Sequence record: MT135026.1
Strand: one strand, 5' to 3'
Length of the DNA: 64,000 nucleotides
Part shown: positions 2,527-52,637 of the stretch, piece by piece
Layout of the letters: each line of letters begins with the position of its first letter
How positions within the stretch are numbered: the stretch's first letter is position 1
The notes under the pieces: model-generated
Databases searched by the model: none
What the model was told of the DNA's origin: nothing
The model's input: only the letters and a program-made list of their open reading frames with translations
Translations under genes and position numbers: made by a program

Positions 2527-4837
<2,311 letters not shown>

Positions 4838-5551: not shown

Positions 5552-6904
5552 TTAGTTTTCAATGTTGTACGTCACGTCAGTGAAGTTCCAAGCAAGTTCA
5601 CCCGGTAGGTAGTACATTTCGTAGCTGCTTGTTACTTGTGAAGACATGTTGTAGTTAATATCAGTAGATGCCGATAGTTCAGAACGTGTTGACCAATCTA
5701 TGTCATTGACCGATGTTACGACTGCGCGAGTCGACCAATCTATGTCTGACACTGCTTCAACATATTGAGAACGATTCCAATCAACATCTAAGCTACTTTC
5801 AGCAATTGCACCCTCTGACCACTGAATGTCGGTGTTGAGTTCAACAAACCCACGTGTATCCCAGTTGATTGCCAGTTCATTAGAAGCAATAGGTGATACG
5901 CCCCAAGGCGATTCGTACGTGCTTTCAATGATCTGACGGTTGTACCAGTCAACATCGTAGTCTCGACCGACGACATCACGAATATTCCAATCAACCAATA
6001 GCTCAGAACTCGCGCTTGAACGTGTTGACCAATCAATTTGCAATGCATCTGTGATGCTGAATCGACGATTCCAGTCAATTTCAAGATCGCTGACAATATC
6101 GCCACGTGTATTCCATACAAGACCGTATAGACTATCAACGCTATGACGCCACCCGAACGTATTAAGTGCTTCAACCTCTGAGCGAACTTTCCAAAGAATG
6201 TCGTAAGAGCTTGTAACTGCTTCGCGCTCTGCGTGAATGATCGTTTGTTCTTCATCTTGAAAGTTTAGGTAAATCGTTCTGATTTCACCAAACTGTGCGT
6301 TTGTAGGCGGATATAGCCAACCTTTCATTCGCAAGTTAAGCGTCCATTCGATGTGTCTCATATCACCAGCCGCACCCTCGAACGTTGTCTCAGGAACAGC
6401 CGATTCTAAGATGATCGGAATATCACGCTGGTCTACCACAACTTCATTTTCATCAAGCTCTTTGATCATTGTATTGAACTGAGGTTGAAAATATGGTAGT
6501 ATTTGTTCTATAATCTGAAATGCATCATCCTGATGTCGCGTATAAACGCTCACTTCAAATTCGAAGTCGTAAGGGACAGGGTTAAACAACTTGTTCGACT
6601 TAGGTCGGTCTCCCGTAAAGTCACGTGTCAGCTTACGATTTGCAATGTTTGTCTTTCGAGTAGCGTCATACGTACACGAAACCATGTCCAAGCCAATTCT
6701 TGGTAGCAGCGTAGCTACATTTGCCACGCTACCGTCGCCGTTAAGCTCTTGACTGTTCAAAGATGCAACAAAGTGCTCCTTTGATGAAACTGTAATTGGC
6801 ACCTTTCTATACCCGTCTCCGCGAGACACGTATATGTTAGAGAACAAGTTTCCCATCAAGAGAACGTATTTTCGTATCGATCTGTGATAGAAATACCCTT
6901 TCAC
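5552..6904 (-). CDS. 15: Tail sheath stabilizer/terminator gp15 with a long Trp-repeat C-terminal extension
   Basis: YFYHRSIRKYVLLMGNLFSNI, VPYDFEFEVSVYTRHQDDAFQIIEQILPYFQP; about 210 aa of 14-residue repeats at the C-terminus. Confidence 0.95.
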   Translation of the reverse strand: MKGYFYHRSIRKYVLLMGNLFSNIYVSRGDGYRKVPITVSSKEHFVASLNSQELNGDGSVANVATLLPRIGLDMVSCTYDATRKTNIANRKLTRDFTGDRPKSNKLFNPVPYDFEFEVSVYTRHQDDAFQIIEQILPYFQPQFNTMIKELDENEVVVDQRDIPIILESAVPETTFEGAAGDMRHIEWTLNLRMKGWLYPPTNAQFGEIRTIYLNFQDEEQTIIHAEREAVTSSYDILWKVRSEVEALNTFGWRHSVDSLYGLVWNTRGDIVSDLEIDWNRRFSITDALQIDWSTRSSASSELLVDWNIRDVVGRDYDVDWYNRQIIESTYESPWGVSPIASNELAINWDTRGFVELNTDIQWSEGAIAESSLDVDWNRSQYVEAVSDIDWSTRAVVTSVNDIDWSTRSELSASTDINYNMSSQVTSSYEMYYLPGELAWNFTDVTYNIEN

Positions 6905-6913
6905 GATGCCCCC

Positions 6914-7750
6914 TTAAAAACTGTCGAATGGATTACTGTTATTTACATTGAAACCAATCGTTGCGTTGCGCGGGTCTGTAGGCTGAACGTCACTGCCGCT
7001 AGGCACGACTTGCTCAGACTCATAGAACTTGTCAACTTCATCTTCGATTTGAGTAATTTCAGCACCTTGTTCGATACCAATATCCCAACGCCCGTCAAGT
7101 GCATTGATTTTGTCAATGTCAATCATTTCGTCAGTATCTTCTCCAAAGTTTAGAATATCGTCAATTGAATCAATGACTGCCTCTGGCTTCTCAAGATTAA
7201 TTTCTTCACCAGAGTAAACGAATTTGGTCATTTTCATCTTGCGCATAGGTAAAACACCGTTCATATACCACGGGTCTTCGCGCTCAATCCAACTAATCTC
7301 AAAAAGACTATTTGCAAGCGGGAAGTAAATTAAATCACCCATTAACGGCTGCTTACCGTCGCCTTGTTGAGCGAATAATTTCGGGTTGATACAGACGTTC
7401 ATTTCATCATTCACTTGAAATCCGAATTTACTGTACCAATCGCCGTCACCATCCCACCCCTCAAATGATTCGACGTAAAGAGACATTCGAAAGTTCTGAG
7501 TGAATTTACTCATTGGGTCTTCGCCGAACACAAGATCGACTTTTTCCATTTCTCTTCGCAGATACACACATTCAACCCCTCGGTTGATGATTGATTCTGC
7601 TACGAGCATGTCAGTTAGATTCTGCTCATTAGTATGATTCACCCAGTTAAAATAAGGGTTGACCAAGTGATTGTTGTAAATCTGGTCATACCCTTTTTGA
7701 CTTTCTAACTTAGCGAACATACCACCCGTATTAGTGTCGTATGCTCCCAT
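6914..7750 (-). CDS. 14: Neck protein gp14
   Basis: NPYFNWVNHTNEQNL, DLVFGEDPMSKF, GDLIYFPLANSLFEISWIE. Confidence 0.95.
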   Translation of the reverse strand: MGAYDTNTGGMFAKLESQKGYDQIYNNHLVNPYFNWVNHTNEQNLTDMLVAESIINRGVECVYLRREMEKVDLVFGEDPMSKFTQNFRMSLYVESFEGWDGDGDWYSKFGFQVNDEMNVCINPKLFAQQGDGKQPLMGDLIYFPLANSLFEISWIEREDPWYMNGVLPMRKMKMTKFVYSGEEINLEKPEAVIDSIDDILNFGEDTDEMIDIDKINALDGRWDIGIEQGAEITQIEDEVDKFYESEQVVPSGSDVQPTDPRNATIGFNVNNSNPFDSF

Positions 7751-38715: not shown

Positions 38716-38730
38716 CGAGAGTATATTGGT

Positions 38731-38853
38731 CGAGTGTTGGTGTAGTGGCAGCACACGTAGCATACTGTAATCAGACATGATTATATTCAGCAACCAATTT
38801 ACGCATATCATAGGGAGATCGTGGGAACGGTTCGATTCCGTTACACTCGACCA
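38731..38853 (+). ncRNA. Interrupted tRNA-Pro(AGG)-like gene; 49-nt insert (38758-38806) between positions 28 and 29
   Basis: Removing the insert gives CG|ATC-ATAGGGA-GATCG; acceptor CGAGTGT/ACACTCG, A73, CCA, T arm AACGG-TTCGATT-CCGTT. Confidence 0.8.
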
Positions 38854-39120
38854 ATGTACTCTCACTTATTAAGCGAGGTGAGCAATTTGATTGTATATCT
38901 TCTCGCACTGGTATTCATAGTCCTCTTTGCCTTGGACATTGAAGAAGAAACGGTGCGTAGCTGTTCTACGCTAATCACATGCGAACGGGTCATTCATCCC
39001 GTAATTAAAGCGCACGATTCCAGATTGTGTTGTGATTAGCTAAGGCAAATATAAACTAGAGGATTTTGTGCTTGCGTAGTGAAGAATCGATCTGCGTAAG
39101 CACGCCCAAGAACATATTGA

Positions 39121-39243
39121 GCAGGGTTGGTGTAGTGGCTAGCACACGTAGCATAAACGCAAACTGTTAAGTTTGTATTCTGCAATCAATTCGCATATCA
39201 TTTCAAGATCGTGACGCAGGTTCGAATCCTGCACCCTGCTCAA
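39121..39243 (+). ncRNA. Interrupted tRNA-Glu(TTC)-like gene; 48-nt insert (39149-39196) at 28/29
   Basis: CG|ATC-ATTTCAA-GATCG; acceptor GCAGGGT/ACCCTGC; no encoded CCA. Confidence 0.8.
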
Positions 39244-39255
39244 TATGTTTTTATG

Positions 39256-39368
39256 GTGAAGTTAGTTCAGTTGGTTAGAATGCCGGCCTAAACAATAGAA
39301 GTCTGTTAAGATTTCATGCTGCATTTTATGCACGCCGGAGGTCGCAGGTTCGAGTCCTGTACTTCACC
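39256..39368 (+). ncRNA. Interrupted tRNA-like gene (Asp-type body, loop reconstitutes as CT-TGC-AC); 39-nt insert in the anticodon loop
   Basis: CCGGC-CT|insert 39290-39328|TGCAC-GCCGG; T arm GCAGG-TTCGAGT-CCTGT; junction ambiguous; no CCA. Confidence 0.75.
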
Positions 39369-39378
39369 CTCAAATTCT

Positions 39379-39502
39379 GGAGAGTTAGCTCAGTCTGGTA
39401 GAGCAAAAGAATGTTAAAGAATACTGACAAGCATTCATGCTGCAAACCTTAATAACTAGGTAAATCTTTTGGTCGGTGGTTCAAATCCATCACTCTCCAC
39501 CA
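39379..39502 (+). ncRNA. Interrupted tRNA-Tyr(GTA)/Asn-like gene; 47-nt insert in the anticodon loop
   Basis: AAAGA-AT|insert 39413-39459|GTAAA-TCTTT; acceptor GGAGAGT/ACTCTCC, CCA. Confidence 0.78.
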
Positions 39503-41060: not shown

Positions 41061-41176
41061 AGTCGGGTAGCTCAGTGGTAGAGCACGAAGAATGATACTG
41101 ACAAGTATCGCTCCAGCACTCCTTCAATTGCCTGTTAAGCACGTGGTCGCTGGTTCGAATCCAGCCCCGACTACCA
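41061..41176 (+). ncRNA. Interrupted tRNA-Asn(GTT)-like gene; 41-nt insert (41088-41128) at 28/29
   Basis: CG|TGC-CTGTTAA-GCACG is a perfect arm once the insert is removed; acceptor AGTCGGG/CCCGACT, CCA. Confidence 0.82.
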
Positions 41177-42907: not shown

Positions 42908-42912
42908 GTTTT

Positions 42913-43000
42913 AGCTTGCATACTGCAATTTAACTTACTCTATTGATCGCTCGACGAACTCAGTTCAGACAGCGATAAACAGACCAAAGAACGCAAGCTG
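42913..43000 (+). ncRNA. CWGCAA-motif RNA (88 nt)
   Basis: AGCTTGC-ATA-CTGCAA ... GCAAGCT-G. Confidence 0.7.
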
Positions 43001-43009
43001 TTGAATAAT

Positions 43010-43616: not shown

Positions 43617-43623
43617 CAGAATT

Positions 43624-43683
43624 AAGCAATCTTTCAGCAAACAATACAAAACTTTTATTTGGAAAAAGAGAAAAGGATTGCTG
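43624..43683 (+). ncRNA. CWGCAA-motif RNA (60 nt) with an anticodon-like hairpin
   Basis: AGCAATCT-TT-CAGCAA ... CTTTT-ATTTGGA-AAAAG ... GGATTGCT-G. Confidence 0.7.
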
Positions 43684-43694
43684 TTTAATTTAAA

Positions 43695-44242: not shown

Positions 44243-44250
44243 AATACCGA

Positions 44251-44367
44251 AGAGTGTTTTCAGCAAACAATTTACTAATATTCTTCTGATGAAAAGAAAT
44301 GTTTGGGGTTCGATTCCCTTTCAGTGTTGGTATCACTGGTCTGGACGACGCAAGTAATAACACTCAG
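44251..44367 (+). ncRNA. CWGCAA-motif RNA with anticodon-like and T-arm-like hairpins
   Basis: GAGTGTT/AACACTC stem; TTCTT-CTGATGAA-AAGAA; GGG-TTCGATT-CCC. Confidence 0.72.
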
Positions 44368-44371
44368 TAAC

Positions 44372-44978: not shown

Positions 44979-45193
44979 AGACAATATACAGCAACAAATT
45001 AAAATCTTACTAAAAATGGTAATGATCTTAACCTGGGCAGTGCTTCGGTGCAGCTTGAAAGGAAAGATTCTCTCTGCCTAGAAATAGTCAGATAGGCGCG
45101 TCGCTGAAACAGACGATATTTGCTTGTTGAGAAGCAACAAGATAGTCAACTCCGATTCATGTTAAAGACGAAAAAACACTTCGGTATTGTCTG
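44979..45193 (+). ncRNA. CWGCAA-motif RNA (215 nt)
   Basis: AGACAATA/TATTGTCT stem; shares internal blocks with 47221-47467. Confidence 0.75.
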
Positions 45194-47220: not shown

Positions 47221-47467
47221 AGACATTGTACAGCAATATTACTAATCAAAGAAGCAAACTTTAATAGTAATGAGGCGCACTAGCTGCTTTCTCAGTGATG
47301 ACGTGAGCCTGTCGCATTCTCGTGGTAGGAAATGACCATTAAGACGGTGTTCGTACTGTAAAACGAAATAGGTCTCATGCCGAATCATGGGTATTTTCTC
47401 GATGAGAAACATCGAGATAGTCAATTGAGATTTAAGCAAAGACGATAAAACACTTCTCGAATGTCTG
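47221..47467 (+). ncRNA. CWGCAA-motif RNA (247 nt)
   Basis: AGACATT/AATGTCT stem; AGATAGTCAA and AAAGACGANAAAACACTTC blocks shared with 44979-45193. Confidence 0.75.
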
Positions 47468-47482
47468 TGTATTGCACATTAG

Positions 47483-47507
47483 AACCTGCCTTGAGCAGGT
47501 TTTTTTG
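47483..47507 (+). terminator. Terminator closing the tRNA cluster
   Basis: AACCTGC-CTTGA-GCAGGTT followed by a T-run. Confidence 0.85.
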
Positions 47508-50547: not shown

Positions 50548-50576
50548 GTTTACACGGGTTCAAATCCGTGTATAAT
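50548..50576 (+). promoter_or_regulatory. Early-type promoter for the TROVE-like gene
   Basis: GTTTAC-17-TATAAT with an A-tract upstream. Confidence 0.8.
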
Positions 50577-50589
50577 CATCACATCAAAA

Positions 50590-50632
50590 CGACATTTTAC
50601 AGCAATTTAATATGAGGAATAAACAATGTCAG
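50590..50632 (+). promoter_or_regulatory. CWGCAA-motif hairpin sequestering the start codon of the TROVE-like gene
   Basis: GACATT-TTA-CAGCAA ... GAGGA ... AATGTC-AG; ATG 50626 lies in the 3' strand. Confidence 0.75.
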
Positions 50633-52062
50633 CATTTATGAACGCTATGCAATCAAACGATTCACGTACAGCAAACGGTGCAGTTACTCACAGCACTTCA
50701 GGTAACGAGTGTCTAAACTTGTTCTTCGGTATTGCTGCTATGCGTGGTAACGATCAGTCTAAAACACTGTTCGGTCGTGCGTTTGCAGAAAACCCCGAAC
50801 TAGCGACACGCATTCTTTTATGGTCTCGTGATGTTCGCGGTGGTGCGGGTGAACGTGGTACTTTCCGTACTCTATTCACTAAACTTTGTAATGAGCAGCC
50901 TGACGTAGCTCGTGCTGTAATGTCGAAAATTCCAGAACTAGGTCGTTTCGACGACTTGATTTCTGCGTTCGGTACAAGTCTTGAGAAAGACGCGATCACA
51001 TTGTGGTCAAACGCGATTGTAAACGACAAGAACGCTCTTGCTGCTAAGTGGTTCCCACGTGAAAACAGCAAAAACGGTCATGTGTTCAAGCGCACAATCA
51101 AGTCTCTTGGTGTAACTGCGAAGCAGTGGCGTAAGATTCTAGCACTTTTGTCTGACACTGTTGAACAGAAGATGTGTGCGCAAGAATGGGATGCAATCGA
51201 CTTTGGTAAGTTGCCATCTGTAGCGTCTGCTCGTTATCAACAAGCATTCGGTCGTAACGCTTCTGCTCGTTACACAAGCTACATCGAGTCACTTCAAAAA
51301 GGTGAAGCGAAGATCAACGCTGGTGCATTGTTCCCATATGATGTCGTTAAGAGCGTTAGTCATGGTAATGCGTCTGTAGCGAACGAGCAATGGAAAGCCC
51401 TGCCGAACTACATGGAAGGCTCTGATGAGCGCATCATCCCAGTTGTTGACGTGTCTGGCTCTATGAGCACGCCGATCAACGCAGGTACAGATCGTTCAGG
51501 TGTGACTTGTAAGCAAGTTGCAATGTCTCTTGGCATCTATGTTGCTGAACGCAATGAAGGCATCTTCAAAGATCAGTTCATTTCGTTCTCAAGCGATCCG
51601 CACTTCCACCAGTTACGCGGTAGCTCACTAAAAGAGCGTCTTGACAACATGAATCGCTCAGGTGAAGACATGAGCACAAACATCGGTAAATGCTTTAACG
51701 TTCTGTTAGAGCGTGCGAAACGTGCAAATCTTTCACAAGAAGAAATGCCAACCAAGTTGCTTATCATGAGCGACATGGAATTCGACCAAGCAAACACTGG
51801 TGGCGGCTGGTATGGTCGCGGCGAACGTGCAAACTTCGACGCAATCAAAGCTATGTACGCACGTGCTGGCTATGAAATGCCACAACTAGTCTTCTGGAAC
51901 ATTCGTGGTCGTCTTGGCAACGTTCCGGTTAAAGCTGGCGAAGCGGGTACTGCACTGGTATCGGGTTGTAGCCCATCTATCCTGACTTCATTGTTGGGTG
52001 GTGAGCTTGAGCCAGTCAAGATCATGCTGAAAACTGTAGGCGTTGATCGCTACAGCTTTTAA
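50626..52062 (+). CDS. DUF2828-type TROVE/Ro60-like helical domain + vWA protein
   Basis: RDVRGGAGER, ALAAKWFPRE, KINAGALFPYDVV, MIDAS DVSGS, STN, SDMEFD, VFWNIR; architecture parallels Ro60/Rsr. Confidence 0.8.
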   Translation: MSAFMNAMQSNDSRTANGAVTHSTSGNECLNLFFGIAAMRGNDQSKTLFGRAFAENPELATRILLWSRDVRGGAGERGTFRTLFTKLCNEQPDVARAVMSKIPELGRFDDLISAFGTSLEKDAITLWSNAIVNDKNALAAKWFPRENSKNGHVFKRTIKSLGVTAKQWRKILALLSDTVEQKMCAQEWDAIDFGKLPSVASARYQQAFGRNASARYTSYIESLQKGEAKINAGALFPYDVVKSVSHGNASVANEQWKALPNYMEGSDERIIPVVDVSGSMSTPINAGTDRSGVTCKQVAMSLGIYVAERNEGIFKDQFISFSSDPHFHQLRGSSLKERLDNMNRSGEDMSTNIGKCFNVLLERAKRANLSQEEMPTKLLIMSDMEFDQANTGGGWYGRGERANFDAIKAMYARAGYEMPQLVFWNIRGRLGNVPVKAGEAGTALVSGCSPSILTSLLGGELEPVKIMLKTVGVDRYSF

Positions 52063-52071
52063 ATAAGTGAT

Positions 52072-52098
52072 AAGGGCGGCATTGTGCTGCCCTTTTTT
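52072..52098 (+). terminator. Terminator after the TROVE-like gene
   Basis: AAGGGCGGC-ATTGT-GCTGCCCTT followed by a T-run. Confidence 0.8.
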
Positions 52099-52112
52099 GT
52101 ACAGAGGTGAAA

Positions 52113-52637
52113 ATGTTCGATTGGGAAGCAATTGAAACAGCTATCAATAACAGTCATCCGAACAGTACGATTTATGTTGGGTGTGATAGCAAGCGTAAGA
52201 GTGATATGATTAGTTACGCTACTGTAATCATCATTCACCTTGAGGGTAGTAAAGGCGCTCAAGTATTCAAATCTATCGAAACTGAACCAGCGTACATGTC
52301 TTGTAAAGATGGTATTCGTAGTCGTTTGATGAATGAAGTCTATAAAGCAGGTGAAACCGCCCTGCGTGTTAAGCCAATGTGTGGTACTCGTGGGTTTGAA
52401 GTTCACGTTGACATCAACCCAGACCCATCCCATCGTTCACACGTTGCGTATAACGAAGCTAAGGGCACTATCTTGGGATACGTGGGTCAAGAACCCGTTT
52501 TCAAGCCTGATGCGTTTGCTGCGTCGTGTGCTGCGGATTATGATGCAGTTAGACGTGCAGACAAAATCGCAAAACGCAAAGAGTTGCGTAGAGCAAAAAG
52601 AAAAGCAAATAAGGCAAATCGTAAAGGGCGCAAATAG
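52113..52637 (+). CDS. RNase H-like protein (YkuK/DUF458 type)
   Basis: IYVGCDS, YATVIIIH, RLMNEV, EVHVDIN, KPDAFAASCAAD; ATG 52113 behind GAGGTG. Confidence 0.8.
   Translation: MFDWEAIETAINNSHPNSTIYVGCDSKRKSDMISYATVIIIHLEGSKGAQVFKSIETEPAYMSCKDGIRSRLMNEVYKAGETALRVKPMCGTRGFEVHVDINPDPSHRSHVAYNEAKGTILGYVGQEPVFKPDAFAASCAADYDAVRRADKIAKRKELRRAKRKANKANRKGRK

Follow-up and report, generated by a model that had tools for sequence, protein, structure and literature searches.

The 64,000-nucleotide (nt) stretch of DNA analyzed here (sequence record MT135026.1; the whole stretch is called the window) comes from Vibrio phage V09, a KVP40-like T4-type vibriophage, and it raises the question of why the gene for a Ro60-like protein should carry, over its own start codon, a motif that also heads noncoding RNAs (ncRNAs) of the phage's tRNA island. 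The gene (positions 50626 to 52062 on the plus strand, an open reading frame [ORF] that was checked as real) encodes a predicted protein of 478 amino acids with DUF2828 and DUF7788/vWA domains. The 2-kb region of this locus matches V09 with 100% and KVP40 with 97.6% identity, and in KVP40 the counterpart, KVP40.0300, bears the RefSeq label "RNA-binding protein." A first-pass annotation had proposed that the element is an autoregulatory operator. Our analysis confirmed the leader observation itself, which is well beyond chance, and partly supported the operator interpretation as a whole.

The architecture of the element can be read directly from the DNA, and each position that had been assigned to the −10 box, the arms, the motif, the Shine-Dalgarno (SD) sequence, and the ATG matches the sequence. 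A strong sigma-70-type promoter (50549 to 50576, on the plus strand like all parts of the leader) with 11 of 12 consensus matches consists of a −35 box TTTACA (50549 to 50554), a 16-nt spacer, and a −10 box TATAAT (50571 to 50576). It is conserved in related phages and suggests a transcription start near position 50583. The leader module (50588 to 50633, with limits set by the covariance model described below) reads GACATT-TT-ACAGCAA-(19 nt)-AATGTC. Its 5' arm GACATT (50591 to 50596), identified by sequence check and comparison, is separated by a TT linker of 2 nt from the core motif ACAGCAA (50599 to 50605), which also occurs in the consensus of Rfam family RF01414; the 19 nt that follow include the SD sequence GAGGA (50614 to 50618), 7 nt before the ATG, and the 3' arm AATGTC (50625 to 50630) contains the start codon (50626 to 50628). 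The motif is thus positioned over the ribosome-binding site (RBS): its loop encloses the SD sequence, and the AUG is part of the 3' arm, as had been described. RNAfold predicts the GACAUU/AAUGUC stem in the leader with a free energy of −3.5 kcal/mol. The window contains three copies of the sequence GACAWTNNACAGCAA, all of them on the plus strand (44980, 47222, and 50591), compared to none in 100 shuffled sequences, and the two upstream sites and the leader are all conserved in KVP40, nt-1, K575, F86, and 1.081.O.

The two upstream copies head ncRNA A (44980 to 45191, plus strand) and ncRNA B (47222 to 47503, plus strand), which are tRNA-island paralogs of about 210 to 280 nt. At its 5' end, ncRNA A reads GACAATA-TACAGCAA, and at its 3' end TATTGTC-TGT; ncRNA B starts just after a tRNA-Ser with GACATT-GTACAGCAA and continues to AATGTC-TGT (AATGTC at 47460 to 47465) and a terminator at 47481 to 47503. 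The end-to-end pairing of the two RNAs covaries (GACAATA/TATTGTC versus GACATT/AATGTC). A hairpin-type ncRNA module of the same island (43623 to 43684, plus strand; AGCAAUC...GAUUGCU, UUUCAGCAA) presumably represents the primary ligand type of the Ro60-like protein. Beyond what the leader contains, the ncRNA modules are extended by a 7th base pair and, on the 3' side, by a conserved CUG(U/G). Neither the island ncRNAs nor the leader matched an Rfam family at its gathering score.

Whether the leader is a true member of this RNA group was assessed with a covariance model (R1) that was built from 21 non-Vibrio copies of the module, included no Vibrio and no leader sequence, and was run on both strands of the window with filters off. 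R1 scored the leader at 22.3 bits (E of about 0.0011), the second-best match in the window. Three matches had E values of <0.01: the hairpin-type ncRNA module (33.3 bits; E = 7e-7), the leader, and a larger module RNA at 44249 to 44368 (plus strand; 22.2 bits) that encloses a T-arm-like hairpin. All other R1 matches outside the island had E values of >3, in agreement with the claim that this is the sole motif copy outside the RNA island. The leader was also found by R1 in 12 related phages, namely, nt-1, K575, F86, 1.081.O, D479, and seven metagenomic relatives. The leader element is therefore a genuine copy of the ncRNA motif, recognized by a Vibrio-free model in the window and in 12 relatives. 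A loose scan of the window for CAGCA plus a partner gave too many false positives and was dropped, and the covariance model was used in its place.

The upstream regions of relatives with 56 to 100% protein identity were compared (L-numbers below are locus labels). In 14 lineages, down to 58% protein identity, the arrangement arm-NN-(A)CAGCA(A) is retained at a distance of about 10 nt behind the −10 box, while the remaining leader sequence drifts; between the start of the motif and the end of the second codon that follows the ATG, these lineages have 25 to 44 nt. All 14 motif-bearing leaders contain a partner of 6 bp for the arm within the SD-AUG zone (shuffle P values of 0.002 to 0.04 per lineage). 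Four stem states were observed, GACATT/AATGTC in most lineages, GACATA/TATGTC, GAAATT/AATTTC, and GAAATT/GATTTC, and the changes between them preserve the pairing, by compensation or by relocation of the partner, and fall as separate events on the protein tree. In L094, the arm is GACATA, and a T precedes the ATG, giving the partner TATGTC. The arm GAAATT of L105 pairs with AATTTC between the SD sequence and the AUG, and the same arm in the sister lineages L092 and D479 pairs with GATTTC, which overlaps the SD sequence; such an overlap of the 3' arm is found in L092, L105, and L108. The second codon of D479 is AGC, and its former partner is consequently gone. The island RNAs of D479 have arms (UGGAUAC, UGGAUGU, and GACAGU) that differ from its leader arm, suggesting that the leader arm follows its own RBS partner and not the ncRNAs.

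Two alternatives that concern the leader itself can be weighed against this comparison. The protein might bind the leader module without repressing translation, either protecting the 5' end from decay or assembling a ribonucleoprotein (RNP) on its own message. No more than about 10 nt separate the module from the predicted 5' end, a placement that is also seen in the ncRNAs; Ro60-type RNPs modulate exoribonucleases (the Ro60 protein of phage phiLo attenuates PNPase; PMC12135203), and modules in the 5' region without RBS overlap are found in L034, L052, and PC14. A pure stabilizer, however, leaves unexplained that the 3' arm sits on the SD-AUG zone in all 14 lineages and relocates there upon a change of the arm, and we consider this role unlikely. 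The second alternative is a leader that acts without the protein, either as a weak hairpin that damps translation or as the relic of a duplicated tRNA-ncRNA junction that was turned into a promoter and leader. For 12 of the 14 lineages, this hairpin is what minimum-free-energy folding predicts; the promoter spacer is T-arm-like, and the order of T arm, about 20 nt, and GACATT-NN-ACAGCAA mirrors the junction of tRNA-Ser and ncRNA B. A simple hairpin, on the other hand, does not need the single-stranded motif, and a relic does not agree with an ACAGCA(A) that stays intact down to 58% protein identity while the nearby bases and the loop length drift. Both forms of a protein-independent leader are very unlikely in our estimate.

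The island offers one further way to pair with the start codon, namely, in trans. The 5' end of ncRNA B (GACATTGT) could pair as an antisense RNA with ACAATGTC at the start codon, with which the leader GACATT would compete. Eight complementary bases are present in six of seven phages, and in phage 1.081.O, both sides change together (GACATTTT and AAAATGTC). In L097, though, the 8-bp match is broken, and in D479, where the gene starts with ATGAGC and the ncRNA B-like RNA with GACAGT, the two cannot pair; the leader module of D479 nevertheless persists, with a new partner in cis. L097 and D479 thus disfavor the trans pairing, which we regard as extremely unlikely.

The protein had been called TROVE/Ro60-like, a name that its predicted fold supports and its sequence does not. 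Pfam recognized DUF2828 and DUF7788 only, and searches for TROVE/Ro60 sequence homology gave nothing significant in Pfam, NCBIfam, phmmer, or profile searches of PDB; the best Ro60-type match in the profile-versus-PDB search, the phiLo TROVE protein, had an E value of 0.81 and was not significant. An AlphaFold (AF2) model was built on 31 homologs (predicted local distance difference test [pLDDT] score of 78; predicted template modeling [pTM] score of 0.75). When this model was compared to PDB with Foldseek, the top eight matches were all Ro60/TROVE proteins over the full length (E values of 3e-8 to 1e-5; template modeling [TM] scores of 0.52 to 0.60), and the significant full-length matches were exclusively Ro60/TROVE structures, including Ro60 of Thermus phage phiLo and Xenopus Ro. 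The predicted model has the ring architecture of Ro60/TROVE proteins, with HEAT-like helical repeats and a C-terminal vWA domain that closes the ring, and the metal ion-dependent adhesion site (MIDAS) motif DxSxS of this domain is intact, with D275, S277, and S279 invariant in 31 sequences. More than 7,000 relatives of the protein were found, and the phages that carry them belong to hosts from many bacterial phyla. Homologs occur in 711 phage records, among them phages of Vibrio, Escherichia, Salmonella, Campylobacter, Listeria, Staphylococcus, and Mycobacterium, and part of them are annotated as "Ro-like RNA binding protein."

The module is linked to this protein family well beyond the vibriophages. 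A copy adjoins the DUF2828 gene of Escherichia coli phage EC6 (AGACCGA-TT-ACAGCAA...GGTCT), another one in Campylobacter phage PC14 (GGGTATT-T-ACAGCAA...AAATACCC) ends 24 nt before the DUF2828 gene, and dozens of marine phage contigs have GGTTCC-TT-ACAGCAA...GGAACC directly 3' of it. Among 70 distinct gene-oriented IMG/VR loci, ACAGCAA was found 142 times on the gene strand versus 27 times on the opposite strand, and 52 of 108 sites had a perfect 6-nt partner for the arm ending 2 nt upstream of ACAGCAA, versus 13% of random positions. The arms vary freely among copies (GGTTCC, GGATCG, GATTCC, GGATGA, and others). An alignment of 21 hairpin-type copies from unrelated phages (A3) showed that the 7th stem pair, which was not used in selecting the copies, is paired in 19 of 21 and covaries (AU, UA, and GC). 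The module consensus is [A][6- to 7-bp stem]-NN-ACAGCAA-variable loop (30 to 240 nt)-[stem]-UG(G/U). Of 13 loci taken from GTDB genome bins, about 10 had R1 modules next to the gene and on its strand, and 18 of the 19 matches were on the gene strand. As a control, 45 kb of T4 including the tRNA/rnaC/rnaD cluster gave a best R1 match of 11.9 bits (E = 0.74). Same-strand adjacency in very different phages thus supports a tie between the module and the DUF2828 family.

The same survey bears on the idea that the module is a signal for another factor, such as a host or phage RNase, a processing enzyme, or the RNase H-like neighbor encoded at 52107 to 52637, and that the leader copy is a processing or decay site. 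The module does mark the 5' and 3' ends of ncRNAs located directly behind tRNAs, and a PF04308 RNaseH-like gene lies behind the Ro60-like gene throughout the clade. The one constant neighbor of the module across Campylobacter, E. coli, Vibrio, cyanobacteria, and candidate phyla radiation (CPR) bins is nevertheless the DUF2828 gene, and T4 has no module despite a comparable tRNA/ncRNA cluster. We consider a signal for another factor quite unlikely.

We lean towards the interpretation that the leader is a translational operator that mimics the ncRNA ligands of the Ro60-like protein. The phage would make several tRNA-island ncRNAs that have a common module, with an end-joining stem of 6 to 7 bp, a 2-nt linker, and a single-stranded ACAGCAA on the 5' side, and the leader would carry a minimal version of it in which the loop holds the SD sequence and the 3' arm the AUG (or the SD sequence). 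The leader hairpin is marginal on its own, and we propose that ribosomes can therefore initiate. Free protein in excess of the ncRNAs would bind the leader module in the manner proposed for the island RNAs and, once bound, would lock the leader stem and exclude the 30S subunit. Abundant ncRNAs would titrate the protein away, so that translation resumes; they might compete as the better module matches, with their 7th pair, their CUG(U/G) tail, and scores of 33 to 45 bits. In KVP40-like phages, a distance of 3 kb separates the island from the Ro60-like gene, which has a promoter of its own, and in distant phages, ncRNA genes directly flank the protein gene. The feedback operator could replace, in the KVP40-like phages, a stoichiometry that is otherwise given by cotranscription. 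If this operator model is true, a Ro60-type protein would here, for the first time, be seen to control its synthesis through a ligand mimic that its mRNA carries, and the ratio of protein to ncRNA would matter during infection. Operator and island RNAs would together form a natural allelic series for recognition by the protein, with 6 versus 7 bp, presence or absence of the CUGU tail, and different loop sizes.

Several points weigh against an operator. The leader scores below the best island RNA (22 versus 33 bits), and since the bases in question are set by codon 2, it has neither the 7th pair nor the CUG(U/G) tail. Its hairpin energy is no better than that of shuffled sequences (z of about −1 to 0); folding energy was therefore dropped as an argument, and the case is built on the motif and the cross-phage comparison. 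The transcription start of the gene is a prediction, and that this protein binds the module is suggested by adjacency and by the analogy to Ro60 and Y RNA. The ATGTC of the 3' arm is also set by the conserved Met-Ser N terminus of the protein and is present in motif-free orthologs of Aeromonas phages, so that in most lineages the 5' arm alone is free to evolve. Most orthologs with 41 to 56% identity (Aeromonas phage phiAS5, Felix-O1-like EC6, and most IMG/VR loci) had no module within the 90 nt that precede the gene. Within the clade, the module has disappeared from L107 and is altered in L090, which indicates that the leader module is dispensable. The expectation that orthologs keep the motif at their start codon thus held for the 14 lineages of the KVP40-like clade (58 to 100% identity) and did not hold for L107, for L090 in its altered form, or for most of the distant orthologs, and the operator appears to be a clade-specific addition and not a family-wide feature. 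A module that does not overlap the start is present in the upstream regions of several distant orthologs (L034, L052, L064, and PC14).

When metagenomes were scanned for the coding pattern conserved at the N terminus, six loci were returned, one or two of which may be true homologs, and none of the six had a leader module at the start. A search of IMG/VR for GACATTNNACAGCA-N(10-40)-AATGTC returned 44 loci, and all except KVP40 and VH7D look like chance matches, roughly as 18 specified bases predict. Seven IMG/VR contigs (L113, L115, L121, L134, L140, L151, and L153) have GACATTTTACAGCAGCA-N-AATGTC over the start of an unrelated ORF (MSIAGDVLLTLKENMLDF...), which may be chance in a single lineage or another gene with a similar leader. 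An (AACT)5 microsatellite lies in the loop of the L089 leader module (5949 to 6008); this module nevertheless retains its arm, its motif, and its pairing with the AUG and scores 32 bits with R1.

Autogenous translational operators that work by target mimicry are well known from E. coli ribosomal proteins L1, S8, S15, and L20, from ThrRS, and from gp43, gp32, and RegA of phage T4. The V09 leader resembles them in that the initiation region of a gene for a predicted RNA-binding protein carries a reduced copy of the putative ligand over the SD sequence and the AUG, and in that this copy looks weaker than the true ligand, so that the abundance of the ligand would set synthesis. It differs in the protein, predicted to be a Ro60-type ring of HEAT repeats and a vWA domain, in the putative ligands, which are phage ncRNAs of a tRNA island, and in the restriction of the operator to one phage clade. 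The control proposed here is thus a new form within a known class of autogenous control. Our literature search found no report on Ro60 autoregulation or on KVP40 ncRNAs.

The second comparison is with Ro60 and its RNA partners. In Y RNA, a stem joins the 5' end to the 3' end, and its 5' side carries the conserved motif that Ro60 mainly contacts (PMC4201824), and the Ro60 protein of phage phiLo binds two upstream Y-like RNAs, Yrl1 and Yrl2, with a CGAA motif (PMC12135203). The system described here and Ro60 with Y RNA or YrlA (Xenopus, Deinococcus, Salmonella, and Thermus phage phiLo) have in common the protein fold, as far as the model predicts it, genes of (putative) partner RNAs that adjoin the protein gene, and an end-joining stem whose 5' side is accompanied by a conserved motif that is for the most part unpaired. 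In contrast to Y RNA and YrlA (RF00019 and RF02553), the motif is ACAGCAA and not GGUCCGA, GNCGAA, or CGAA; one module copy of V09 is located in an mRNA leader, and the protein has no significant TROVE sequence match. The window contained no YrlA match at the gathering score. Larger ACAGCAA-headed RNAs of marine phages (L074, 5307 to 5407 and 5425 to 5538; L052, 5815 to 5925) align over the full YrlA model with 39, 30, and 38 bits, respectively (gathering score, 69), and these alignments link the module, at the level of model similarity, to Y-RNA-like tRNA mimics.

A tested biological role for the family comes from Bas63 gp130 of a Felixounavirus, reported to be a Ro60-like protein that counters the ppl defense (bioRxiv 10.1101/2024.10.10.617714). 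Its gene lies directly upstream of a tRNA array, the same arrangement as for EC6 gp023, which is 46% identical to the V09 protein, and gp130 is probably an ortholog of the latter. Unlike in V09, no RNA motif or autoregulation has been described for Bas63 gp130, and EC6 has no leader module. The closing stem, NN, and ACAGCAA provide a testable candidate RNA recognition element for a very large uncharacterized family of phage proteins, of which Bas63 gp130 already has an antidefense phenotype.

A wider comparison is suggested by the Class I RNAs of Dictyostelium, which have been defined as RNAs of about 60 nt with a covarying terminal stem of 6 bp, an invariant 5' G, an 11-nt motif beside the 5' arm, an AAG start, and a CUGU end (Kjellin et al. 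2021, PMC7919456) and have been reported as unique to dictyostelids (PMC7919456). Their pull-down partners were GuaB, NdkC, Rnp1A, and the uncharacterized DDB_G0281243, and the RRM protein Rnp1A was named as the direct binder (PMC7919456). The Rfam RF01414 consensus reads GaUcuC-CUUACAGCAAU...GagAuC-UG, with the 11-nt motif C-CUUACAGCAAU, and an alignment to this consensus places the 11-nt motif (C)CUUACAGCAA beside the 5' arm of the phage modules as well. The ncRNA modules of the phages begin with AAG or AAAG and end with CUGU or CUGG, as Class I RNAs do. Judged by sequence and predicted pairing, the published definition (length, covarying 6-bp stem, 5' G, 11-nt motif, and ends) fits the phage hairpin modules point for point. 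RF01414 matched them below its threshold, with 27.4 bits at 43626 to 43683 and 24.9 bits at 7450 to 7506 of L015 (gathering score, 41.5). Set against the Class I layout, the leader (GACAUU-UUACAGCAAU) has the 6-bp stem and the 5' G, and its ends are AAC or AAG...CAGC in most lineages and CUGA in D479; RF01414 gave no match to the leader at E values of up to 10. Class I genes are unlike the phage modules in having a Dictyostelium upstream sequence element (DUSE) promoter about 60 nt upstream and being transcribed probably by RNA polymerase III, while the phage modules have sigma-70-type promoters and are cotranscribed with tRNAs. Pfam describes DUF2828 as found in eukaryotes and viruses. On this basis, we put forward, tentatively and with considerable doubt, that the stem-UUACAGCAA module is the recognition element of a large and so far unrecognized RNP family made of DUF2828/DUF7788 Ro60-like proteins and "Class I-like" RNAs, of which Class I RNAs would be the eukaryotic branch, possibly with a DUF2828 partner (candidate, DDB_G0281243), and the KVP40-type leader the first cis-acting member. 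If this held, a Ro60-type ring could serve as a translational repressor. The likeness to Class I RNAs makes the long-standing question of what those abundant RNAs bind, and what they do, directly testable.

The tRNA island contains other RNAs with related features. The larger module RNA at 44249 to 44368 (AGUGUU...AACACU, UUCAGCAA) holds in its loop the T-arm-like hairpin GGGGTTCGATTCCC, which recalls the tRNA-like domain of YrlA, and has counterparts in L096 (about 1053 to 1121) and L097 (673 to 746). A weaker variant of the module with ACUGCAA is found at 42911 to 43001 (UUAGCUUGC-AU-ACUGCAAUUUAA...GCAAGCUGU; 14.7 bits, E = 0.17). Five tRNA-like RNAs (38716 to 38860, 39115 to 39250, 39256 to 39368, 39379 to 39499, and 41061 to 41173) are normal in their acceptor, D, and T arms and encode their CCA, with 40 to 50 extra nt replacing the anticodon loop; their inserts have in common a small hairpin and CAGCAA, CTGCAA, or CTGCA. 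Rfam classes three of the five as tRNAs at 113 to 121 nt, and the equivalents in K575, F86, and D479 are annotated as "tRNAs" of 110 to 124 nt.

The surroundings of the Ro60-like gene include three further features. The promoter spacer (50551 to 50572) is an inverted repeat resembling a tRNA T arm, CACGG-GTTCAAAT-CCGTG, and the spacer hairpin is kept in related phages with other inner sequences (nt-1, CGGGTTTAAACCCG; K575, GCGCTTGATTAAGCG). The repeat may serve as an operator or mark the RNA ends of upstream transcripts, or it may be what remains of a tRNA. The gene is followed by a predicted intrinsic terminator (52072 to 52094, plus strand). The PF04308 RNaseH-like (DUF458) gene directly downstream keeps its position throughout the KVP40-like clade and also in L090 and L094, and its product may be a nuclease partner of the Ro60-like protein. 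Finally, in an Anaerolineae genome bin (L161), two tandem modules (3821 to 3993) lie immediately upstream of the DUF2828 gene, and the second one ends 3 nt before a GGAG SD sequence, an independent case of a module that abuts an RBS in an unrelated lineage.

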